A DNA stretch of 64,000 nt from Takakia lepidozioides. Lineage: Eukaryota; Plantae; Bryophyta. The notes beneath the pieces were generated by a model. It was given only the letters and a program-made list of their open reading frames with translations. It ran no database searches and had not been told where the DNA came from. The first letter of the stretch is position 1. Each line of letters begins with the position of its first letter. This document shows positions 1,232 through 61,705 of this stretch, piece after piece. The stretch is taken from assembly GCA_030704615.1 (NCBI GenBank), contig CM060731.1, positions 74,896,001-74,960,000 of the forward strand, given 5' to 3'. Made by a program: the position numbers and the translations under genes.

Positions 1232-1881
1232 TGTCGCGGCCCTTTGCCTTGAGGGCAGGGGGGGTCGGGACACAAGAGGGGCTGCCCCTGTGGTGGGGGC
1301 AGTAGCAGCGATAGGTACGGGGGCTGAAGCACCCTTGAGTGCCCAAGGCACTCAAGGAGGCGGAGGCGCTCACTAGGTGGAGCCCCGCACACCGGGTTGC
1401 GGTGGGGGTGGCTCCACAAGGGGTGGTGGTAGCTTAGCGGGACTTAGTGGGGGTGGCATAGGACTCACCATGGGGTGGAGACCTCGAGGTGGGAGTCGTG
1501 GGGAGTCTTGGGACTCATCACGGTCCATTGGGGCCGCGGTGAGTGGGCCAAGACTCACCGCGACTCACCACCGGGAATCGAGGGTCTTCGTGGTGGGTTC
1601 GCCATAAAATGGCATGGCTGGTTGTGAAACCCCCGCGGACAGCTACAGAAGTATAAATAGGGAGTAGTAACCCCAAGAACGGTGCAAGCCCGTTGGTGAC
1701 CAAAAACTAGTGAGTAAGCGAGCGAGCCGGAAAGCGACCAAAGAGTGGGGAGCTGTTCCGGACTGCCAACTACAAAAGGGAATTCCCGCTGGTTCCAAAT
1801 CGGTGGAGGGTTCTTTGGGAGAACAAAGGGGGACCGTTATGCCCCGGTGACGGGGAGCTTACCGAAGGGAGGTGCGCGACA
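1232..1881 (+). repeat. 5' LTR (650 bp)
   Basis: Nearly identical to 11163-11889 apart from a few substitutions and a ~78-bp indel near its 3' end. TATAAATA at ~1652. Confidence 0.95.
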
Positions 1882-1883
1882 CT

Positions 1884-1895
1884 TGGTATCAGAGC
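1884..1895 (+). promoter_or_regulatory. Primer-binding site (tRNA-iMet)
   Basis: TGGTATCAGAGC 2 bp after the LTR end. Confidence 0.95.
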
Positions 1896-1936
1896 TTAGA
1901 GTTCAGTACGCGATCATCCTTGGGATTGGCCTCATC

Positions 1937-4900
1937 ATGGGGTCGGGCAAGCCAAAGCGAAAGCGGAACGGCCCAAAAGATGATGATCCTGGTGAGCCCG
2001 ATGGGGGCGACGTGTCACCGAGGCGGCCATTTGAGGAAGCGATGAATGTCTCCGAAAACGAGGCCGCTCAAGAGCGGGAGGAATCCGAGGAGTCGGAGCC
2101 CGAGGAATCCTGGAGAGCTCCGACAAACCAAGAGATGCCTCCCATGCCGGCAGCCTTTTGGGAAGGGTTGTTGGCGCAGTTTGGCGGGACGTTGAAAGAC
2201 GTGTTGAAGGTGGCTAATGTCACTTCCACTAAGGCAAAGTTTAAGGTGAAGCCTAAGGAACCCGGCACCTTCAAGGGCGTTCAAAATCGGAAGGCACTCA
2301 ACACCTGGCTCCTGGAGCTAGAGCAGTACTTCCGGGCGGCCAAGTTGAGTGATGAGGATCGGGTGGAAGTGGCTCCCACCTATTTGAGGGGCTATGCTCA
2401 ACAATGGTGGCAGAAACGCCTTCACGACCGAGGCCCAAGCCCGGAAACCTTGAACTGGAGTGGGTTCAAGGAATTGATGAAGAGACAGTTTGTGCCCCTC
2501 AACGCATCCTGGCTTGCCCGGGACAAGATGAGGAATTTGAATCAAACAGATGACATTCGGGGGTATGTCCAGGCTGTCAATGTGCTGTTGCTCGAAGTCG
2601 CGGACATGACAGAACCAGAAATGGTCTTCAACTTTGTGGCGGGACTGGCCCCATGGGCCAGGCGGAAGTTGGAGGAGAAGCCACCCAAGACTTTGAACGA
2701 GGCAATTGAGAGGGCTGAATGTTTCTCGGATGTCCCTAGGGGTGAGAGACAAGGCCGTACGGAGCTGAACCACAAGAAGACCCGGCGGGAAGGTGACTCC
2801 TTCCGACCGGAAAAGAAGTGGGATAGGCCACGCGGCGACAATGGCATGTGGAAATCGAAGGGAGGGCCTTCACACGTCAAGGCGGCACCCGGTGCTTCGA
2901 AAGGAAAAGCGGGTGGAGCGGCTTATGGCGGACAAAAGGCAACCTTTGATGGAGTGTGTTTCAATTGCGGGGAGCCCGGGCACATGGCCAAGAAGTGCAC
3001 AAAACCTCGACAATTGAACATGACTCGGGCAACCACAGAGCTGTCGGAAGATACCATCAGTCGCTTGGCTCCGAATTCCTACGCTATAGTTTGCTGTCCT
3101 CCGCAACTTGGGAGAGCCTGGATCCCAAATGAGGGAGGACTTTGCAGAGTGACTGAAACTTACCTTTGTTCCAAATTCAAGCTCAAACCGGGCACAGTTT
3201 ATTTGGAAGAAGAAAGAAAGGATGTTCTTGGACAGGTTGACGAGACCATTGTCGTGCTAGGTAACGACGGAGGTTGCGGAATCGAATGGCACGTACCCCC
3301 ATCAGACACCATCCTGTACCGAGCTGTGGGAATGCCCATTCCCTTTCCGAATCAGTCGCTGCCCACACCATCCACAAAGGAGTCCGGAAACCGACAGGCG
3401 GCCACTGCCAACAAAGAGGTATGCAACGATAATCATTCCCGACCTGGACCGTCAAGACCCTCCATAGCTTCTCGTGTGGACGTATTCGACATTTCCGAGG
3501 AGGAAGATGATTGCATTGAGGTACCCATGTCCTCCACACGGTCGTTCAAATCCGGCATGGACGTCTCTGTAGGTGCTACGCATGTGCCCTCGAGCATAAC
3601 TCCAACCCGGTCCATTGTGCAGCTCCTACGACAACATCACCTCGATGGTTCTCGCTCCGAGCTGGCTGCTCTCGACTATGCCAAATTCCCAGTCAGAAAG
3701 GTAACGTTTCTGCCTCCCGAAGTCGATGGCAATGTCATCTTCGAGTTTCCACCTGTTTCTTCGTCAAACAAAGCCTCCGGGATGTTAACAGACATGGATC
3801 GAAAGCATGACGGACACCCCTGGTGTGTGACGAAGACCAGTAGCACGAAAATTGCTGATGGTGTTCGTGTACGATATGTCCTCTGTGCGGGGAAGCTGAG
3901 GTGCCTCAATCCCACCTGCTTCCACTTTCTCTCCAAAGGAGGGCGGAGAAACGAGACGGATTGGACTGGCACAATGCATCATCCATTCATTGTCTCCAGC
4001 CAAGCTCCTGCGGGTTCTTTCAAGTGTGCACATTGCAAAGAACCACCGACGTGCATGTCCATGTGCAGAGCCAAGCAATGTTACGTAATCCATTTGCTCC
4101 CGGACTTGACTAGAGCTTGCATACACGTTGGGGTCCACTGCCACCCCTTGGCGAGAGGCAACATGCGTGAGGCTGTGCAGGAAGCACACGACATCATAAA
4201 AGAGGAGGTGAAATTGAGCCCCGGAGCCAGACCAAAGCAGATTCAGCTGAAGGCAGCCCACAAGATTGCTCTTGGCAAAATCATGTCTGAAGATGGTTCC
4301 GACCGAGAGCCCTTGACCGAAGACGAGATGCGTGACCTCTTGGAGTCCGTCTCGCACGTTTGTAGTCCAAATGTGCGGAATCACATCGTATCTTGCAAGC
4401 AGGAGTTTGACAGGGGGTCGGATATGTACTCAATCCTGGAGGTGAAACGAATGACTGGATATGACTACATCCAAGGTAGCAGGTTTCCAGGGCAAGGCAG
4501 CGAATCCGATCGTTGTTACATTTTCAAAATGTCGACGTGTGGGCCTGGGAGCGGAGTCGACTTGGTCACTCGCATGACAACTGGAAACTTGTCGAATGCT
4601 TGGGTGATGTTTGATCACATCAAGCGAATTACAAACCATCAGTGGGTGACTATGGGTGCGCATGTTTATGACTATTACTCCAAGAGGCTCATGACGATTG
4701 CAATCTGCGAGATGAAAGGGGAGGACACACAGTCCGAGATGCATCTGTGGGAGGGCATAAACGAGCAGATGGCAAGGGCGGGATTGCCAGAGCCCAATTT
4801 CAGGGGATTCATGGCAGACAACGCTCAGGCCAACTGGGCAGCGGTGCGGCGTGTGTACGGTGAGGACCCCAATGTTCCAATGGAGGGGAAAGAGAGATCA

Positions 4901-6672
4901 TGTGGATTCCATTGGATGCAGAGTCTTTCTCACTACACTTCCAAATTTGTTGCTAGCTCATTCCAGGCTGAACACCGTGTCCTTTGTACGGCGTGGAAGG
5001 ATGCACCCACATTTGATGACGCGGAGGTTAAGTTTGCTATCATCGAGGCTTGGTGGAACACGTCAGGTGCAGTGGAGACAACCAATCTGGGAGCATTGCA
5101 CAGCTGGTTGGGGTGGTGGCATTTTGGGTATCGACAGTTCGGACAGTACATGCGGGAGGTAGGCTGCTGTCATTTTCGTTCATTTGTCTTTCTGTTACGG
5201 ACATTTCGATTGGTCCCTCACCATTGTTTTTGTCCTTCTAGGAGCGGTGCTTGGATTCCGACACGGACATGCCGAACACGAATATGGCAGAATCGGTCCA
5301 CTCCTCCTGGCGAGCGTCTTCTATCGCACATCTGGTGGACGTAGTGACGGCCATAATGGAGGACATCGACAGAGCAATCATGCAGCAAGCCATGTACTAC
5401 AAGTTCCTGAGCGGCAAACAATGGGGCTTTGGGCCGGACAGGGAGGAATTGTTGGTACGAACAGCTTCGAGGTCTAAGAATCCACTGAAATGGGCGACAG
5501 CATTGCGAGAGAAGATCAAAGGGACGCCTCTGCACCGCAGAGGTGAACACCTAGAGGGGGACGTCCGGACTCGCCCTATGAGGCGGAGGATTGAAGAGGA
5601 ACCCGGGTGCGAAGAGGATTCCTGGAGATCCGACAGGAACATTCGGACAGCACCTCGAGGTCCCATCATGTTGCCGCACAATGTGTCTTCCAGCAGTGGA
5701 AGCCCAAGAAATTCCAGATCGTCGTCGCCTTCAACCGGGGATTTCGTGCGAGAAATTCCCACCGCTCCCTTGCCCCAGATTCCGCCCGCTGTTATGCAGT
5801 ATGGCCAAGCCATTGTGGAGACGACTGTGTCTGCATCACAGTGGAGAATTGCTCGCACAAAGCCGTCGTTTCGAGGAAGGTGTTCCGCAATTCGTGTGGA
5901 TACACGGCAACGTTGTTTAGAGATGATAAGGAGGAATCCAGATGGGGCTGTCCCTGCTCCTACTTTTACAGGAAGATTTGTCCATGCAAAGTTTGCGGAG
6001 GCGACAACCACCCAGTTCTGGTTCTGCAGGCACGACATTATGACTTGCGTGTATGGAAAGCCCAAGTACGGCATACAAACAATGCCAGAGGCTCCCCCGG
6101 TGTGGCCGGTGGAACCAGGCTGCGATCTGAGTCAGGTTGAGGCCGACGCCCTTACCGCCGCAGGATTTCGGATGGTGCAGCGCACTGACGTCCCCAGACA
6201 ACCATTTCCGCTTCCACAGCCTCCACCACCGACCCCTGTGAGAGCAAGAACAATGGGACACGACAGCTCTAAGCATCCTACACACCGTTGGGGGAAACCG
6301 AAGAGGTGGCGACCTCCCTCAAAAGTGAACGAGACAAGGATGGGGAATGCACTTCGGATGAACTGTACAATCCAGAGCTCGACAGAAGTGCCCATACCAG
6401 GATTCGGGCGTGTGTATCAGATGGCCACGACAGGCTCAGCTGTTCGCAATGAGGTGTACACCATCACCATTTCAGAATTACCCACCTGCAATTGCACCGA
6501 CTTCCAGATCATGGCGAACAAGGGGGCATCATACTGCCCTTGCAAGCATTTGTACTACGTGTACCTAAAGAGACTCCGTTGTAATTCCACAACTCATCAC
6601 TTCATACATGCACCAGGGTTGAGCCCCCAGGAGGTTCACACTCTTCTGAATATGGATCCAGGGGACCAGTGA
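1937..6672 (+). CDS. Gag - GCM-like Zn domain - MULE DDE transposase - SWIM fusion protein (~1550 aa; exons 1937-5158 and 5242-6672)
   Basis: Contains retrotransposon gag and a CCHC knuckle (CFNCGEPGHMAKKC). GCM-like pattern DGHPW...CAGKLRCLNPTC...CAHC...HVGVHCHP. MULE motifs VMFDH, FMADNAQA, CGFH and TNMAESVH. SWIM CNCTDF...CKHLYYV. A phase-0 GT-AG intron at 5159-5241 joins the two ORFs in frame with no stops. Confidence 0.85.
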
Positions 6673-6919
6673 GCTTGGCTTGCGGTCCCAATACAATGGT
6701 ACGCCCATCCTTTTCGGATAGTAGAACTGTACTGTTGCCAGTACCTCAGACTCTGGCCACAGAAAGGTCCGACATATGTCTTGCCTACCAGTAACCTGTT
6801 TTGCTCGAACTAAGATATTACTATATCGTTCACTTGTTTCCACGTGCATGTATTTTTGTATGTTGGAGGGTTCATGTTTTTCTGCTTTCCGAAAACTTGC
6901 TTTCCTCATTCGACCTCCG

Positions 6920-7518
6920 ACAAGGAAATGCGGCGTCGCATTTCCAAGTATCGTCGTAGGTATTGGTAGAGGCGGCCTTCGCCAACACCAAACTGCTCCG
7001 AAATTTCGCACGTGCCAACCCTAATGCGGCACCTTATTTCCCAGTTCAGTGGCAAATCTTTCCCGCCGAATACCCGAAGAAGACAGAATTGTGAAGTACT
7101 GCAGACTCTATTGGTGCAGACTCCATTGGTTCAATCGCGGCAAAAGGGTCAGCTTCATTCCAATGTTAAGGCATGTAAAACCGCGGAATACTCTATACAA
7201 GCCAGTATGCGACGTCCTTTTGCAGTGGTATACTGGATTTCCCGTTGCACGGTCACTTATTTCCATGAGCGGATCTAAAAAACCATGAGTGGACTTGTTA
7301 CTGACGACATATCTTCGCCGCATTACATGATCTGGAACGTCCAAAAACGGCAAGGTCAAATAAAAAAACTATTATTTTAATACTTGTTTAATCTGCCGCA
7401 TTTCCAAATTTGGAGGAGTCCGCTCATGAAATCCGCGTATCTTAGACTTCGGCTCACCGCTCATGCGGCTCATGCGGCTCATGGCTCATGGTTTCTGCTC
7501 ATGAAATAGTAAACCTCC
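6920..7518. repeat. Right subterminal region and terminus of the captured MULE
   Basis: Palindrome GGAAATGCGGCGTCGCATTTCC at 6924 plus partial copies. GCTCATG(CG) repeats end CATGAAATAGTAAACCTCC at 7518. Confidence 0.75.
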
Positions 7519-8411
7519 ATGCATATAGACTAATTTACCAAACCTAACTAAGTTCCGTTGTAATCAAGCGCTATACCGCTACACCTGCACAAAGGGCGTC
7601 CATTCAGTAGAGGTTGAAACTTGACTTGGGCATCTCAAAGTAGACTCCTAACCTATCATGCCAAGTGATACCATTCATCATCATACCTATCATACCTATC
7701 ATCATCATGCCAAGTGTAAGGTTGTTGACCACTTATGTGAGAAAAACAAATGTTACATGGAAGCAAAAAAATTCTACTTTGTGGTTGTACAGGCTACAAG
7801 AGTGTTCCAGAACCTGGAGAGATAGACCTCTCGGTGGCTATGGAAGCTATACAACAGTTGGAGAAACCATGACTCCAATCAACAGAACACAAGTTATCAG
7901 ATTTGAAACTCAAGCTACATGGCATATAAGAGACAAGGGTGCAGCTATAAGTCCTGGTTGAATATTCATGTCTCCATGAGTGTATATTCAGATTTTTATT
8001 ATTGTATGCAAAATTCTTAGATTATGAATAGAGGGTTCTTGAAAATGAGGCAAGTTGGTCATCATTGTCTCATATGTGGGGTGGACAAAGATTGTTGGAG
8101 ATAAAAGGCGGCCTCATCAGCCTCACGCTGTGCACTTCCCAATGAAACCCAACAATTTCACAACCCTCCAGAGATCGTGCAGCCCAGGCCCTGCCCCCAA
8201 GTAGTATGGTTGGGAGATGATAATGGTTTAGGGTGTATGGTTCAATATGGACAATGGATATGATGAAGGGAAAAGATGACATTTATTTAACAGAAATCCT
8301 CAAAGTACATGACATAAAACAATTATCTTTGAATGTGATTGTCCCACTTATTCACTTAATCACAATTACATACAAGAGCTTGTGTAATTAAAAGTTGGAG
8401 AGCTTCCCTAC

Positions 8412-9560
8412 TTAACACGGTATTACCAATGAGGTCCAATTGATCAAAATATCTATGTTCATGCGTTGCCAAACCACAATACCGAGACATGTAGTAGTGG
8501 AGATGAAAACAAGAGATCGAATCCTTCCCAACCTTTCCAATTTCATAAGCTTGTGCACGGACACGAACCATGTCAGGAATGAGTTGAGCTCCTTTGGTGG
8601 GAAGGTCATGCAAACCACCTGCACATCGCCATCTTTGATTCCCACGAGGCCCCAAGTCTTGGTTACCAATGTGTTGGGGGTCTTCCCTAAATCGTGGGTC
8701 ATCAATAAGGTGGCTGGTCCATCTACATGATCAAACACATCACTACATTATAATAACATTCCAATGTAAATTGTAGCTTAACAATGAAAGTACAAACAAG
8801 AGAAAACCATGAGCTTACCCATGCAAACGTTCATACTCGCGAAAGAAACGAGCAGGAACATGTGATCGACGATATCGACCGTTTTCATTAATCGTGTGAA
8901 CTCGATGTCCATTCCAAATCTTCACGTATTCATCAACAGCTTCTTGTACTATGGGCATATATACGTCAATAAAAGATTTTCGTTGCCACGGATCGTCCAT
9001 ATCCAATAATCCATCATTGACCATTGCTTGGAAGCAATTTTTGTAGTAGAACATTACCTTCTCCCATAGATGCCGCCAAAAGTGTTCAATCCTCTAACGT
9101 GGTGATTACACCACACAAAATATTAGAAATATGCACAACATTACACACTCAATGATTAATAAAGATGAACCAAGAAATATGACAGAAATGTAAAGTTGAT
9201 ATGCAAGATAGAATTGTATAGAGCACTAACCTGATTGTGTGTGGAAGACCTAGTCAAGTACGGATTGGGTGTTTCAGAACGTGTGGCTTCAATGTGTTGT
9301 TTTATAAGAGAGTGCTCTACTGCAAAATCAGATCGAATTCGTAAAGGTGCTCCAAACTTGGAAACTGCATCGTGATATCCTTTGAAAATGGTTTTTTCTT
9401 TCTTGTTTCTTGCAACGTTCGCCCATAAAACAAAATGAGAGGCCCCATCAATGCCAGCATGTACTCGAAGACCAAACATAACCAATTTGTCATAAGCTGC
9501 ACCACGAATTGCATACATGTTTTAGTTTGCCTACAATTTTGTGCGATATGTAATGCAAGA
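8412..9560 (-). pseudogene. Degenerate intron-containing integrase-core (IS481EU/rve-like) DDE transposase fragment
   Basis: YDKL..GLRVHAGIDGASH...PLRIRSD...SSTHNQ, then intron 9094-9230, then RIEHFW...WNGHRV. The usual WHxD motif is deleted. Confidence 0.7.
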
Positions 9561-9601
9561 AAACGTCTTGCATGTGCATCTTCAAAGAACATTAAAGCGT
9601 C

Positions 9602-10257
9602 TCGATGGAATTCATGACTGCTATGCCGCTGTCAAAAGGATTCGATGCAATCATGGTGGTGGTGGATAGGTTCAGTAAAATGGGCCATTTCATCCCCACC
9701 AAGGAGACGGCAACGGCGCAGGAGACAGGGCGACTTTACTTCGCCCACGTCTTAAAGCATCATGGAGTCCCGAAGGCGAATCGGAAGCGAGGGAAGTGAA
9801 GTTTGAGGCAAGCACAGAGGTCTGGTTGAACATCAAGAATTTCCGACTACCTCCGGAAGTGAGTCCGAAGTTCGTACCTCCGTATGCGGGACCCTTTCGC
9901 ATTCGGAAGGTTATGAATGAGGATGTGTATGAATTGGAGCTGCCGGCAAACAACAAGGTGCACCCAATATTCCATGTCTCCCTTTTGAAGCCTTACTTCA
10001 AAGATGAAGCGCGTCCGAATCGACATCAAGTGTTGCGTCCGCCACCTATGCTGTTGGATCATGAAAATGGACCTGAGTACGAGGTGGAGGCAATACTTAA
10101 GTCGAGGAGGTTCAAGAACCGAGAAACGGAGTATCTCGTCAAATGGAAGGGCTATCATCATGTGGAGGCATCTTGGATGCGTGCCTCAGAAATGGGAAAC
10201 GCATCCGAGGCGGTTGCAGCTTTCGAAGGGCGACCTCAAAAGCGGAAGAAGCGTTGA
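9602..10257 (+). pseudogene. Chromovirus integrase remnant with internal deletion, plus chromodomain
   Basis: SMEFMTAMP...VVVDRFSKMGHFIP...HGVPK is joined at ~9776 to the GPF region. Chromodomain EYEVEAILKS...YLVKWKGY...ASW. Confidence 0.9.
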
Positions 10258-11162
10258 TGGGGACATCAACCTTGGAGCGTGGGGGAGGAAATGCATGCTT
10301 AGCCCGGCTTAGCTAGCTTAGGAATCCGATTACAAAAACTTGTATTGTACAAAAATTTGTTATAAAGGAAATGGGTTCCAAATGTTGTGCGTCTATTTTG
10401 TTTGGAATGGTGATGCATGGTATGGTTGGCTAGTGTGTAGAATGCATGCTAGCTTATAAAAGTGGGAGAGGTAAATGGGGTTAATCGTGTGTTTGCGTAG
10501 TGCCGAAATTCGGTGACCCCCATCCAAGGGGCAAGGAAACTTGCGACTTCTTTGGGAGTTCACGTGCTAGTGCGCACCTGGCGCGTGCGCGTACTATAAC
10601 TGCGCTACCGAGGGGGTTGCCTTGTAGTGCGGGCTAACGCGGAAGCTACGTGCTTCCGTTCACGTACTATAATCGTGTAGCCTCGGGACGAAGTCGTAGT
10701 GCGGCTTCGGCGTGTTCCCATACCTCAGGCCAGCATTCCAAGGCGGACCCAATTGTAGTGATTGGGGCGCACGGTTGGTTCAAGGTTATCTTCCTAGTCA
10801 AAGAGGGTTCCAGGTGAACCCTTGCTCAAGGTGATGCCAAAAGCGACATCATGAGCAGTTGCAAGCAATGTTGTTGCAGTAAGGTGATTCGATCCTCAAG
10901 GAGGATCGTTCCTTGGCCTTGAAGTAGGCCAAGAAGAGTGCACTGGGAGGAGCTGGAGAGGCTCCACCCTTGGCCGGGACTTGGAGGAAGTCGGCCGAAC
11001 TAGCTAGTGGAGAGTAGAGTCAAGTGTGGGGTTTGGTTCTTTGCCATGGGACGCCATGGTACGGAAACAAACTCCTTGATGTGGGACGCCACAACTTGGA
11101 TGTTCGTTTCTACAAAATGGACAAGTCGATGAGGACATCGACTCCCTGTTGGTAGGGGTGTG

Positions 11163-11889
11163 TGTTGCGGCCCTTTGCCTTGAGGGCAGGGGGGGTCGGG
11201 ACACAAGAGGGGCTGCCCCTGTGGTGGGGGCAGTAGCAGCGATAGGTACGGGGGCTGAAGCACCCTTGAGTGCCCAAGGCACTCAAGGAGGCGGAGGCGC
11301 TCACTAGGTGGAGCCCCGCACACCGGGTTGCGGTGGGGGTGGCTCCACAAGGGGTGGTGGTAGCTTAGCGGGACTTAGTGGGGGTGGCATAGGACTCACC
11401 ATGGGGTGGAGACCTCGAGGTGGGAGTCGTGGGGAGTCTTGGGACTCATCACGGTCCATTGAGGCCGCGGTGAGTGGGCCAAGACTCACCGCGACTCACC
11501 ACCGGGAATCGAGGGTCTTAGTGGTGGTTCGCCATAAAATGGCATGGCTGGTTGTGAAACCCCCGCGGACAGCTACAGAAGTATAAATAGGGAGTAGTAA
11601 CCCCGAGAACAGTGCAAGCCCGTTGGTGACCAAAAACTAGTGAGTAAGCGAGCGAGCCGGAAAGCGACCAAAGAGTGGGGACCTGTTCCGGACTGCCAAC
11701 TACAAAAGGGAATTCCCGCTGGTTCCAAATCGGTGGAGGGTTCTTTGGGAGAACAAAGGGGGACCGTTATGCCCCGGTGAGCAGCCGAAGCTCCAAGTTG
11801 GCCCGGCGGCCAGGTTGGGAGTCAGGCGCGCGCATCAAAGCGAGTAACTATGACTTGAGGGGGAGCTTACCGAAGGGAGGTGCGCGACA
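11163..11889 (+). repeat. 3' LTR (727 bp) preceded by PPT GGTAGGGGTGTG
   Basis: Matches the 5' LTR; TSD GATTC follows. Confidence 0.95.
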
Positions 11890-11912
11890 GATTCTTTCGA
11901 TTGCTCCTGGAC

Positions 11913-13430
11913 GAAAATACGGCGCCGCATTTCCGTATTGCATCTTGGTCATGCACCAGAGCGACGGAAATGCGACACCGAGTTTCCGTCCGGGGGAAAC
12001 CTTTATACTCTCCAGAACGGAAATGCGGTAACGCATTTCCATCCAGCAAGCACGGTAGGTGAAGGTGGTACGGAAATGCGGTACCGCATTTCCGTTCAGT
12101 ACCGCATTTCCGTTCTGATTGAGAATTATGAACAACGGGAACAGAAATGCGGCACCGCATTTCCGTCACAGTCGCACATTCCGACATACCAGAACAGAAA
12201 TACGGCGCAACATTTCCGTTTTATATCTGACGCATGGAGCTGAGGGATAGAAATGTTGCACCACATTTCCGTCCTCACAAGACATTCATACTCTCCAGAA
12301 CGGAAATGCGGTAACGCATTTCCATCCAACAAGCACGGTATGTGAAGGTGGAACGGAAATGCGGTACCGCATTTCCGTTCTGATTGAGAATTATGAACAA
12401 CGGGAACAGAAATGCGGCACCGCATTTCCGTCCGAGTCGCACTTTCCGACATTCCAGAACGGAAATGCGGCGCCGCATTTCCATTTTGTATCTGATGCAT
12501 GGAGCCGATTGCAATTCCGACCGCTTGAGACATTCATACTATCCAGAACGGAAATGCGGTACCGCATTTCCGTTCTGACTGAAAATCGTGAACCATCGGA
12601 ACTGAAATGCGGCAGCGCATTTCCATCCGAGTCGCACCTCCCAACATTCCAGAACGCAAATGCGGCACCGCATTTCCGTTCTGATGAAAAATCGTGAAAC
12701 ATCGGAACTGAAATGCGGTACCGCATTTCCGTCGGAGTCGCACCTTCCGACATTCCAAAACGGAAATGCGGCGCCGCATTTCCGTTTTGTATGTGAGGCA
12801 TGGAGCTGTGGAACGAAAATGCGGCACCGCATTTCCGCCAGGGTCAGACCTTAATACTCTACAGAACGGAAATGCGTCGTGAACAACGGGAACAGAAATG
12901 CGGCACCGCATTTCCGTCGGAGTCGTACCTTCCGACATTCCAAAACGGAAATGCGGCGCCGCATTTTCGTTTTGTATGTGAGGCATGGAGCTGTGGAACG
13001 AAAATGCGGCACCGCATTTCCGCCAGGGTCAGACCTTAATACTCTACAGAACGGAAATGCGGTACCGCATTTCCGTTCTGACTGAAAATCGTGAACAACG
13101 GGAACAGAAATGCGGCACCGCATTTCCGTCCGAGTCACACCTTCCGACATTCTAGAACGGAAATGTGGCGCCGCATTTCCCTTTTGTATCTCATACATGA
13201 AGCTGTGGGATGGAAATGCGGCACCGTATTTCCGTTCAACAACTAAGGTATGTGAAGGTGGAACGGAAATGCGGTGCCGCATTTTCTTCCAACAAGTATG
13301 GATGTGTAGCTTCGTGATGGTACTTAACGGAAATGTGGCGCCGCATTCGCATTTTCACTCCAACTCATCAGACGCTGGGACGGAAATGCCTTGAAATGTG
13401 AACACGTGGAGCAACGGAATTGCGGCACAT
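11913..13430. repeat. Array of ~28 22-bp palindromes GGAAATGCGGnnCCGCATTTCC on a 53-bp period with about five recurring spacer types
   Basis: Starts at 11913, 11966, 12019, 12072 | 12143...12461 | 12550...12868 | 12894...13265, each run in steps of 53. Confidence 0.95.
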
Positions 13431-55649: not shown

Positions 55650-58360
55650 ATAAAAAATGGCTCTCTGAGTCTTCTTTCCTTGTATAGTCTCAATGAGCCT
55701 TTCCGGTTTCTTTCTCTGCCTCGGAGTACTCCACTATTTCATCATATGGCAAGTAAGACCCAGATTGTTGATCTCCACTGGGAGATGAACTAGTAGCTAT
55801 GAGTGGTGCTCCCACTGTTGAACTAACTCCTGAATTACTCACTGTTGAGCTAATTCCTGAATTACTTGGTCGTGATGCTAGGACTATTTCAGCTGGGGAA
55901 ATCCCACTACTGGAGGCTGTACTTGGGATTGACCTCTCAATGGAAGTCTCATGTCTATTCTTGGATATTGTCTAAAGAAGGTGAGATCCAATACTAACTC
56001 TTGTTCTTCTCTTAGACCATTAATCCCTGATTCTTCTGACTATGAGAATGTATCGTCTTCTATAAACTTAACATCTCGGGAAATTAGTACAATGTTGTCT
56101 TATTTCTTTAACAGTCTATACCCTTTGCTTTCCTCGCTGTACCCCAAGAATATACATTCTACAGATCGCAGGTCTAACTTCTTTCTTAAATCCTTATGAA
56201 CTTGAGCATAAGCTTTGCACCCAAATACCCTTAAATGAGAAAGGTTTGGTTTTAATCATATCCATTTATCTATAGGTGTTTTATGATCCTCTATTGCTTT
56301 GGTAGGAGACCTATTTTGTAAGTAACTTGCTGTAAGAATGGCCTCTCCCCAAAAAGACTTACTAAGACCTGAATGGTGTAACATAGACAATACTGCCCCT
56401 ATCAAGTGTGTCCTATTCTTTCTTTCGAAGACACCGTTCTGTTGTGGGGTCCTTGCTTATACACTAAACTGCCTTTTTATCCCATGTTCTTGACAAAAGA
56501 TATTAAATTGTGTAGACCTATATTCGCCTCCATTGTTTGACCTCAAGACTTTTATCAGAATTTATCTTAGAACTTACTAGTTTGGTTCTCTACCAACTGT
56601 TTATAGAGTTTAAATTTTTTGAAAACCTGAGATTTATGTCTTAATAGATAGACTACTATGTATCGGGACCAATAGTTAATAAAGGTAGCAAAGAACTTAA
56701 ATCCCCCCTGTGTGGCGTTTTACAACGGGCCACATATGTCAGAGTGAACTAATTCTAATAGGTCAGACGTTCGTGTTCCTCCCTCTGTTGGAATTTTCTC
56801 TCGTGTCTGACGGTTTACCCTACATTATGCATAACTGACAAAAAGGAAGAGTCTTTACATCATATTTATCAATTCCCTCTACCATGGAGTTTCGCATTAA
56901 TTGATGCATTCTCTCTGGTTTATGTGCCCTAATCTCTTATGCCAAAGATCTGTGCAACTATTAGTTAGAACTGTCATAGCTTCGTGGTGTGTGACTTATG
57001 CGGACTCTCATAATTTGTACAAGTCACTTTCTAATCCACACTTTGCTATCTGAATTCCTCCTGAATTTCTTAGCAGACAATATCCCTTTTTGACAGTCAT
57101 CTCTCCTCATGATGAATCAACTGCTTAATCGAAAATAGGTTTTTCTTTAACCCTGGAACATGTAAGACCTTTGGAATTTCTTTTGTCTCTCCACTTCAGT
57201 ATAATAATTAATTGACACATCTCTGTGACCCTCTATTTTATGAGTTGTATTATCACGCAAATAAACTACCTGTCCATTCTGACAGGACTGATAGTTTGTG
57301 AATGAGGTTATGTTGTAGGCTCTGTGACCCCACTATCTATGTACCAACTTGTCTATGCAACACTGATGTAGTCATTGCAATGACCACATATAGCTTATTA
57401 TCTGTTACTGCTATGTTACAATGTCTGGCTGTAGGAGCTTCTTTCTCTAATCTTGTCCTACAATCTTTAATCATATGACCATAGTTCTCGGCACTTGCAA
57501 AGAAACATTTAATTTGATTTTTTTTTCCCATAATTGTTATTATTACTAGTTTTGCTTACAGTGTCAGCACTGCCTTGAGAAGAGTTAGATTGGTAGGTTT
57601 TCTTATTCTTAAACCCATACCTCTTCCCTACTAACAAACGAGTTGACGATCCAGAAGGTGCTTCTAAGTTTTTCATTAGAAATTCTTCATGCAATAGGTC
57701 TGTTATTAAATATTGAAGAGAGAGTCCAAGTTGTCTACGTAACGAACTAATGAGTGTTGTGTAGTTTCTAACGCTATGAATATGTTTCGTGACATTCTCT
57801 CCTTCTCTCATCTTTAATGTTTGTAGCTTATCTTTAAGAAACATCTTAGTCACAGCATCGTGGGATTCAAAGAGCCTCTTTAGCTCTTCCCATGCTTCAT
57901 GAGAAGACCCACATGACATGACATGAGACACAATGCTATTTTCTAAGCAGTTGTTGATTATACAGAGACAAGGGACATCCCTTTCCTCCCAATGGTCGAC
58001 ACTACCAGCCCCAGTGGCTGGTAGAGCTGTAGCACATGCGGCCGCAACGAGTTTCACTTCTTGACCATCTATTGTCTTGGCTTGCGCCATTGATCTAGGC
58101 ACCCGAAGCTTCTCTAGTTTTTCATTTTGTGACCTTCGTCTATTCTGGCAGTATGTGACAAATGCTAAGTTAAGACTATTAACCCGCTCTGATACCATGT
58201 AAATAATATACACAGGTCTTATCCACTATAGAACTGAACTCAGACTCTCATCAGAGACAATGTGTAATCTATATATTATAATCCATCGGAGAAGAAGCTT
58301 ATACCTCTTAATATCTTTAGAGACTACCTTTAGCTATCTAGGTCTTCATATTTTCTTTTA
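55650..58360 (-). mobile_element. Truncated Ty1/copia (5' LTR 58198-58360, PBS 58186-58197, gag-PR-IN decayed)
   Basis: TGGTATCAGAGC; gag with LQTLKMREGE; LWHKRLGH; HSDICGP; PQQNGV; FWGEA. Confidence 0.85.
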
Positions 58361-60219: not shown

Positions 60220-61339
60220 AAAGATGGATTAAGCTCAGTCAAGAGAAATACTTACGAGAAGTAGTGCATAAATTTAAGATGAAAAGTTGTAAACCAATAA
60301 ATACACCTTTCGAAGTAGACATTAGATTGTCTAAAGAAGAATGTCCAGCCACAGAGAAGGAGAGACTCACAATGGTAAACATTTCATATGCTAATGCCAT
60401 TGGAAGTGTCATGTACAGTACAGTCTGTACGAGATTTGATTGTGCCTTTGCCATCGGCTGTTTGGCGCAATTCCTATCGAATCCAAGTCCGAGCCATTGG
60501 ACCAAAACAAAGAGAGTCCTAAGATTTTAAAGTACCAGAAAGTTGAAGGAGGGTCCGACATCTTGCAAGGATATTCTGATGCTGATTAGGCGGGAGAAAT
60601 CGATACACAAAGGTCCACTTCCGCTTATTGCTTTACAATTGCAGGAGGAGCCATTAGTTGGGCACGTAAAAAGCAACGGTTTGTAGCATTATCGAGCACA
60701 GAAGCTGAATACATGGCTTTATCAAAGGCAACAGCAGAGGCTATTTGGTTACGACGCTTACTGAAGGATTTGGGGTTTCCACAGTTGTTGCCAACTATAA
60801 TTAGGGCAGACAATCAGAGTGCCATAGCACTTAGTATAAATCCTAAATTTCATGCAAAAAATAAACATATAGATATCCAAGATCACTACATAAGGGATCA
60901 AGTCAAAGAAGGAGAAATCATCTTGAAGTATGTTTCTACTACGAAGATGGTAGGTGGTTTTTTTTACCAAAAGCGTCAATGCAGAAAAACACTTGTTCTG
61001 TGTTCAGAAGTTAGGTCTTTGGATGAAAGCTAGAGAGGATGACCAGAATGCTCATGAAGAATGACATATGTCTAATTTACCTATCTAAGTTTTAGTGGGA
61101 GTAAAAGAAGATATGAAAACCTAGATAGCTAAAGGCAGTCTCTAAAGATCTTAAGAGGTACAACCTTTGAAGTAGTGTAGTCTTTCGTATTTGGATAGAG
61201 GTTGCATAAAGGATTCGCTTTGATTGTAAGGAAGAACTTCTTCTTTGATGGATTATAATATATAGATTACACATTGTCTCTGATGAGAGTCTGAATAGAT
61301 TCAGTTCTATAGTGGATAGGATCTTGTATATTATTTACA
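60220..61339 (+). mobile_element. Ty1/copia 3' part (RT end, RNase H, PPT, 3' LTR 61102-61339)
   Basis: YANAIGSVMY, ALSSTEAEY, DNQSAI..HAKNKHIDI. The LTR is homologous to 58198-58360. Confidence 0.9.
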
Positions 61340-61705
61340 TGTTGGAGGTGTCAAGGCTATAGCCCTTACACGACACTCTGAGAACAGAAGAGGATGGGAA
61401 GCTCAATGGTAGAGCACCCCACCAGAATGGGGGAGGTCCTAGGTTCAATCCTTAGCCCGACCGTACGCCGGTGGTTTTCCAACATGGTATCAGAGCCAAG
61501 GTTGTGGCGGTGGTCAGAATGGGTGGGCATTAGTTATAAGGGCTATGCCTTGAGGGGGTGTGTTGGAGATGTCAAGGCTATAGCCCTTGCATGACACTGT
61601 GAGATCAGAAGAGGACGGGTAGCTCAGTGGTAGAGCACCCCACCGGAATGGGGGAGGTCCTAGGTTCAATCCCTGGCCCAACCATACGCCAGTGGTTTTC
61701 CAACA
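61340..61705 (+). mobile_element. TRIM (366 bp) with tRNA-derived Pol III promoter in both 145-bp LTRs (Cassandra/Helenus/Ajax-type)
   Basis: LTRs at 61340-61484 and 61561-61705 (TGTTGG...CCAACA). PBS TGGTATCAGAGCC, 76-bp internal region with GGCAT..ATGCC hairpin and PPT. A box TAGCTCAGTGGTAGAGC, B box GGTTCAATCCC. Confidence 0.93.

Follow-up and report, generated by a model that had tools for sequence, protein, structure and literature searches.

Can a retrotransposon carry the complete transposase gene of a DNA transposon as an in-frame extension of its own Gag protein, and by what route would such a gene have come to lie there? Both questions are raised by a stretch of 64,000 nucleotides from the genome of Takakia lepidozioides (assembly GCA_030704615.1, contig CM060731.1, positions 74,896,001 to 74,960,000 of the forward strand), which we call the window and number from its first letter. 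A preliminary description of this DNA, made from the letters alone, had claimed that a long terminal repeat (LTR) retrotransposon in the window is a chimera of class I and class II elements. We found that the element, located at 1232-11889, is a chromovirus-type (Ty3/gypsy) LTR retrotransposon and that the chimera is real as assembled: a chromovirus shell encloses a transposase gene which, by alignment with its free relatives, is full length and has retained its conserved residues. One copy of this Gag-transposase chimera is known.

A single reading frame joins gag to a transposase

The fusion lies in a single open reading frame (ORF) on the plus strand that extends from 1745 to 5344 and has its first ATG at 1937. 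The first part of this frame is gag (1937-3019), with a capsid region at approximately 2228-2719 and a CCHC zinc knuckle at 2954-3004. Within the first 420 residues, Pfam recognised Retrotrans_gag (PF03732, E 1.7e-13), Ty3_capsid (PF19259, E 2.3e-09) and zf-CCHC (PF00098, E 1.1e-06), all above threshold, and nothing beyond these gag, capsid and CCHC domains was recognised in ORF 1745-5344. The second part is exon 1 of the transposase (3020-5158, 713 codons), which was delimited by alignment to P0001, a free homologue of metagenomic origin. Exon 1 is followed by a GT..AG intron of 83 nt in phase 0 (5159-5241) and by exon 2 with the stop codon (5242-6672), all on the plus strand. Splicing of 5159-5241 joins the frame to 5242-6669 and to the stop at 6670-6672, which yields 1074 + 476 = 1550 codons with no stop or frameshift, the length and continuity that had been claimed for the fusion product. 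When the frame is read unspliced, it ends at 5342-5344, 1135 codons from ATG 1937, so the unspliced product is cut off before the catalytic glutamate.

Because the zinc knuckle ends at 3004 and the free relatives, which begin with MATIR.., start in alignment with the residues encoded from 3047, the joint between gag and transposase falls within 3006-3047 on the plus strand. This replaces the interval of approximately 3020-3060 proposed before and indicates a head-to-tail fusion of a whole gag to a whole transposase. An ATG at 3020, nine codons upstream of 3047, is likely the native start of the transposase, and the sampled free relatives start no more than 14 codons from the joint. The sign of the GC skew flips at approximately 3000.

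The sequence on either side of this joint, and of the second joint at which chromovirus DNA resumes, is unique within the 64-kb window. Because the left joint has neither a terminal inverted repeat (TIR) nor an inverted partner anywhere in the window, it is not the end of a transposon. No inverted repeats bracket 3020-9590, and at neither joint with chromovirus DNA is a transposon terminus, a TIR or an inner target site duplication (TSD) visible. No relative of the junction-spanning protein was found in JGI metagenomes, and the exact ORF product is absent from public gene calls. A word-indexed protein search with the gag and junction region was also empty, a blank that reflects the method and not absence.

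Close to its N-terminus, Gag carries a basic cluster, KPKRKR (residues 5-10; 1949-1966), that resembles a nuclear localisation signal. A Gag-transposase product, if there is any, would inherit this cluster.

The shell is a non-autonomous chromovirus

The element is bounded by a 5′ LTR of 650 bp (1232-1881, located by LTR alignment and blastn) and a 3′ LTR of 727 bp (11163-11889, located by LTR alignment), both on the plus strand and both with TG...CA ends. It is flanked by the TSD GATTC, read directly from the sequence at 1227-1231 and 11890-11894 and perfect on both sides, as had been described. The two LTRs are in direct orientation and share 98.9% identity across 619 aligned bases (a single 1-bp gap and 6 mismatches), which bears out their earlier characterisation as near-identical except in one respect: a block of 76 bp (11781-11856) is present only in the 3′ LTR. 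This block is an indel younger than the insertion.

A TATA box (TATAAATA, 1652-1659) in the 5′ LTR precedes the fused ORF, so the structure would allow expression driven by the LTR. A primer-binding motif of 12 nt, TGGTATCAGAGC, starts 2 nt after the 5′ LTR (1884-1895, plus strand), and we take it to be the complement of the 3′ end of the plant initiator tRNA-Met; the 64-kb window contains no initiator tRNA-Met gene against which the motif could be aligned. A purine-rich tract lies ahead of the 3′ LTR (11146-11162).

The chromovirus integrase persists as remains on the plus strand at 9596-10257, traced through Pfam and reading frames. A core fragment (9596-9778) holds the first catalytic region, and at approximately 9780 the sequence jumps directly to an SH3 domain and a chromodomain (9796-10257; Pfam SH3_Tf2-1 E 6e-14, Chromo E 1e-12). 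Because the SH3 domain directly follows the fragment, the remainder of the integrase core is deleted. The previously reported loss of the core thus applies to most of it, whereas the fragment at 9596-9778 survives. We assigned the shell to the chromoviruses because a Tf2-type integrase SH3 domain and a chromodomain lie near its 3′ end; the features of membership seen are the LTR pair with its TSD, a gag with capsid and CCHC knuckle, and an integrase that ends in a chromodomain. Protease, reverse transcriptase and RNase H had been described as gone, and no ORF or Pfam match for any of them was found across 1232-11889. Because these enzymes are absent, the copy is unable to move by itself and is a non-autonomous derivative.

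Predicted domains and completeness of the transposase

All searches and folds were made exon by exon. The predicted fold and family motifs of exon 1 point to a GCM-like (WRKY-GCM1 type) zinc DNA-binding domain at 3626-4162, with conserved Cys/His ligands at 3884-4144. Downstream of it, at 4442-5140, lies the putative N-terminal two thirds of an RNase-H-like DDE core, with aspartates at 4613-4615 and 4817-4819 and a CxxH motif at 4901-4912. In exon 2, the catalytic glutamate (5290-5292) is followed by a middle region rich in Cys and, at 6487-6549, by a SWIM-like CxC...CxH motif. All of these regions are on the plus strand.

An AlphaFold model built with 110 homologues as the alignment had a predicted local distance difference test score (pLDDT) of 87.5. 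Residues 43-221 of the model resembled a GCM domain bound to DNA (1odh_A; Foldseek probability 1.00, template modelling score 0.49; VIA Z 6.0 with 127 residues aligned). Residues 315-547 resembled the ISCth4 (IS256) transposase (Foldseek probability 0.96-1.00; VIA Z 7.9) and also matched Hermes (Z 6.8) and the cores of retroviral integrases. By shape as well as by language-model features, the nearest Atlas clusters carry MULE, FAR1 and SWIM. The model thus supports a MULE-like transposase with a GCM-like DNA-binding domain, although the middling Z values denote resemblance and not proof; the modelled DDE core is closest to IS256/Mutator and hAT.

The GCM-like and MULE DDE assignments of the preliminary description find backing in the predicted fold and in family motifs, whereas Pfam does not confirm them. 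The MULE domain (PF10551) had no match up to E 10 in the window protein and none in the 24 homologues that the Pfam scan covered. A Pfam SWIM match near the C-terminus remained below threshold (E 0.02-0.06); all relatives that extend over the CxC...CxH motif have conserved it. Searches of PDB sequences with the protein and with the family profile gave no match. The fold of exon 2 had a pLDDT of 63 and no PDB match, and a word-indexed protein search with exon 2 returned no match, where the blank again reflects the method and not absence.

Exon 1 retains 56 of the 59 columns conserved in the family, including ten of the ten conserved Cys/His, the aspartates at 4613 and 4817 and the CxxH motif at 4901, and its residues 17-713 align to free copies. 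Exon 2 aligns end to end with exon 2 of the free relatives and retains all nearly invariant residues.

Free relatives of the transposase share its intron

An exhaustive HMMER search with 3500-5158 identified 1026 representative proteins at E ≤ 0.001, most of them fragments and none with a Pfam domain. The transposase clade, to which we refer as 'GCM-MULE-SWIM', is large and has no Pfam model. P0001 shares 37% identity with the window protein across 94% of exon 1 and ends exactly at the intron donor. In total, we compared 82 related loci, comprising P0001, 80 loci from JGI metagenomes (L003-L082) and one locus on a eukaryotic chromosome (L002; NCBI GCA_046195345.1, CM100801.1). From their record numbers, the JGI records, in which the clade is abundant, are presumably peat-moss and bog samples.

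Many of the related loci (for example L003, L004, L006 and L013) have exon 1, a gap of approximately 100-130 bp and then exon 2. Because the gap occurs at the same place in these free relatives, the intron is a family feature and neither end is missing from the gene in the window. No gag adjoins the transposase at any of the 82 loci, and Pfam detected no gag in the 24 homologous proteins scanned; as gag is found in 0 of the 82 loci, a fusion of this kind is unusual within the family. Upstream of the transposase, five metagenomic loci have a ParB-methyltransferase homologue in divergent orientation, and L002 has the same divergent arrangement with a shorter distance. Free members of the family combine the transposase with such a divergent ParB-methyltransferase gene and with an array of palindromes.

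The foreign block extends beyond the transposase gene

The feature had been described as ending at 6672, which is not the end of the foreign DNA. The foreign DNA spans from 3020 to approximately 9590, about 6.6 kb in all, and chromovirus sequence resumes at 9596. Past the ORF lies the 3′ region of the transposon (6924-7405), with a full copy of a 22-bp palindrome (6924-6945), a degenerate copy (7021-7042) and two half-sites (7316-7324 and 7395-7405); an array at 11913-13350 repeats this motif. The remainder, at 7500-9590, is AT-rich foreign DNA (GC content 38-43%) with a decayed antisense integrase relic. Overall, the foreign block is contiguous and composite, consisting of the gene, the palindromes and the AT-rich rva_4 DNA, with only two joints to chromovirus sequence.

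The relic is of the rva_4 type and is located on the minus strand at 8815-9518 (Pfam rva_4 E 3e-13 and 3e-07), where stops interrupt it, and it has no relationship to the integrase of the chromovirus.

L002 has tandem palindromes of its own (1786-1963 of that locus; core ...CATGCGGCACATG...), which share the motif ATGCG with the palindrome of the window.

The element inserted inside a palindrome array

Directly after the 3′ LTR, a phased palindrome array of 1.4 kb (11913-13350) belongs to a neighbouring ParB-methyltransferase transposon, and a degenerate palindrome (1195-1216) is situated 16 bases ahead of the 5′ LTR. When the element and one copy of the TSD are removed, the flanking palindromes are 55 bp apart, compared with an array phase of 53 bp. 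This restored spacing places the insertion within the array. A transposase homologue belonging to the neighbouring transposon is lacking throughout the window, and no terminal repeats link the left flank of the window to the right end of that transposon.

Age of the insertion

Dating was based on 6-7 changes in 648 bp of LTR and on the grass substitution rate of 1.3e-8, and it places the insertion at roughly 0.4 million years ago, provided that a grass-like rate applies. The 4650-bp coding sequence is expected to have gained approximately 22-25 substitutions, of which about 4% would create a stop, and the probability of no new stop is approximately 0.4 under neutrality. The LTRs contain two indels in 1.4 kb, as against no frame-breaking indel in 4.65 kb of coding sequence, with a conditional probability of approximately 0.05. 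At these values for stops and indels, we rejected the intactness of the ORF as a sign of selection.

Origin of the chimera

How did gag and the transposase come together? The direct LTRs, their TG...CA ends, the identical TSD copies, the primer-binding motif and the purine-rich tract support a single retrotransposition event. We give an approximately even chance to an origin in which a non-autonomous chromovirus captured one contiguous foreign segment and was then mobilised in trans. The segment between the zinc knuckle of gag and the first catalytic region of integrase would have been replaced by one 6.6-kb piece of foreign genomic DNA, starting at or just before the transposase start codon and continuing through the intron, the stop codon, the palindromic sites and approximately 2 kb of unrelated AT-rich DNA. 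The source may have been a chromovirus positioned upstream of such a transposon. The 5′ joint may have arisen through deletion or aberrant read-through and the 3′ joint through a template switch back to normal chromovirus RNA; the chimera would then have been reverse-transcribed and integrated by enzymes supplied in trans, giving the 5-bp duplication. If the promoter of the 5′ LTR fires, unspliced RNA would yield Gag with a transposase truncated before the catalytic glutamate, and spliced RNA would yield the full 1550-residue Gag-transposase. Because the intron is retained and an extra 2.9 kb of non-coding foreign DNA is carried, accidental capture fits better than an evolved hybrid element, and the odds favour accidental capture.

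Several points weigh against this origin. The sense-strand intron is retained, and passage through RNA usually removes such introns; its retention implies either an unspliced RNA template or a chimera formed at the DNA level. Captures of the type of maize Bs1, considered below, are free of introns, and the captured sequence here has one of 83 nt. The open frame is compatible with neutrality and is no demonstration of selection. In addition, the exact position of the 5′ joint inside 3006-3047 cannot be fixed, because no intact relative of the chromovirus was found.

A possible but clearly less probable explanation is nesting in place. A complete chromovirus would have inserted first, two insertions, of a transposon from the neighbouring family and of a further element, would then have hit its pol, and deletions would have removed the segment from protease to RNase H together with the 5′ part of the transposon, leaving gag in frame by chance in a dead single-copy relic. 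A retained intron is what such a history predicts if no RNA passage followed the fusion, and the palindrome array of the same transposon family around the element makes a nearby donor for a local hop plausible. Moreover, an in-frame sense joint arises by chance about 1 time in 6, an intact ORF requires no selection, and nested insertions are common in plants (PMC7264820). However, at least five or six separate events would be needed in one element while its LTRs diverged by only approximately 1%, and the end of one of the three deletions would have to fall no more than 14 codons from the transposase start. The AT-rich block with the decayed integrase must be a second, already dead insertion that was truncated at 9590. 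The joints, for their part, show no transposon terminus, TIR or inner TSD, and the terminal repeats and TSD of its own that mark a simple nested transposon are missing. Because capture needs two joints and a small integrase deletion, compared with the two insertions and three deletions of nesting, we consider capture the more probable of the two.

We also considered, and rejected, that the transposase of the neighbouring transposon was moved in by an inversion: a single inversion could not have left the two LTRs in direct orientation with each adjoining the TSD.

It is improbable that the element is a working hybrid, in which an LTR-driven Gag-transposase would supply the ParB-methyltransferase/palindrome transposons or the GCM-like domain would tether chromovirus particles or cDNA to palindrome arrays. 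An equally small chance attaches to an alternatively spliced LTR-driven RNA whose Gag-transposase would bind the palindromes of the family and so feed transposase to it or steer integration into the arrays. All tested catalytic and zinc-binding residues are retained, Gag has its N-terminal basic cluster and the LTR its TATA box, and the element lies exactly between two array palindromes, whose 55-bp spacing after its removal compares with the 53-bp phase. If true, a functional fusion would explain this exact position, and the element would be one that uses reverse transcription to disseminate a DNA transposase gene. Yet chromoviruses are expected in repeat-rich chromatin anyway, since the chromodomain targets heterochromatin, and the window is filled with repeats, so co-location with the array is weak evidence. 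Furthermore, the element has neither a protease nor a protease site for releasing the transposase, and it carries along 2.9 kb of junk DNA.

Least probable of all is an assembly artefact, in which the gag/transposase joint or the joint at approximately 9590 would be a false join of two repeats: the region is repeat-dense, but the sequence flanking each joint on either side occurs once in the window, the outer LTR pair and TSD are coherent, and a false join would have had to maintain the frame and lie at most 14 codons from the start codon.

Comparison with known elements

Gene capture by plant LTR retrotransposons is already known, whereas a complete transposase as a Gag fusion is unusual; a full-text literature search brought up no earlier case of an entire class II transposase gene fused in frame to Gag. 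A review (PMC7264820) describes plant LTR retrotransposons that transduce genes in the manner of retroviruses, usually as one or few copies. According to the account of maize Bs1 in that review, which cites Elrouby and Bureau 2010 for Bs1 and other gene-transducing plant LTR retrotransposons, Bs1 is an LTR element without a pol of its own in which a sense foreign coding sequence shares one frame with gag, and it depends on functions in trans and exists in one or few copies. These traits recur here, where intact LTRs enclose a sense-oriented captured sequence that continues the frame of a truncated gag and is followed by a truncated pol. Bs1, in the same account, contains intron-less host-gene fragments, whereas the cargo of the window element is the entire transposase gene of a DNA transposon, intron and stop codon included, together with 3′ binding sites and flanking DNA.

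Transposase-related sequence inside an LTR retrotransposon is also found in Retand, whose ORF4 contains transposase_28 (PMC7264820). The Retand ORF, found in most copies, runs antisense between pol and the 3′ LTR, and pol is kept; in contrast, the transposase described here is in sense, is fused to gag and replaces pol.

MULE transposases use WRKY-GCM1 zinc fingers (PMC1702500), and those that include FAR1/FHY3 (PMC1702500; PMC6446971) share the order of domains predicted here, namely a zinc domain of the WRKY-GCM1 type, an RNase-H-like DDE core with CxxH and a C-terminal CxCxnCxH. The window protein differs in that PF10551 is unmatched, in that its predicted DNA-binding domain is GCM-like rather than of the FAR1/MuDR type, and in the extra Cys-rich region of exon 2.

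In acutely transforming retroviruses, the order is an LTR, a truncated gag that continues in frame into a captured gene, a truncated pol/env and a second LTR, and these viruses are helper-dependent. The window element shares the in-frame architecture of gag and captured gene (Gag-Onc in the viruses) and is likewise replication-defective. It differs in its plant host, in having no envelope and in the intron of the captured gene. Gag-only elements of the TR-GAG and BARE-2 type have kept gag, the primer-binding site, the purine-rich tract and the LTRs, have lost pol and are mobilised by an autonomous partner; unlike the window element, they carry no foreign gene.

Even as a dead single copy, the chimera documents retrovirus-style transduction in what is apparently a non-seed land plant. 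It also offers a clean full-length reference for a transposase clade of more than 1000 proteins that has a predicted GCM-like DNA-binding domain and no Pfam model. If further copies or transcripts exist, the element would be a naturally occurring example of a DNA transposase gene that is copied by reverse transcription and expressed from an LTR, and it would provide a direct handle on the exchange of parts between transposon classes.

Other features of the window

Rfam gave no match on 1-22000. At 58240-58360 and 61102-61294, two pairs of inverted repeats, one of 58 nt (97%) and one of 66 nt (91%), flank approximately 2.8 kb that may represent a small DNA transposon. Just beyond these repeats, ARAGORN detected an odd tRNA-like sequence at 61613-61684.

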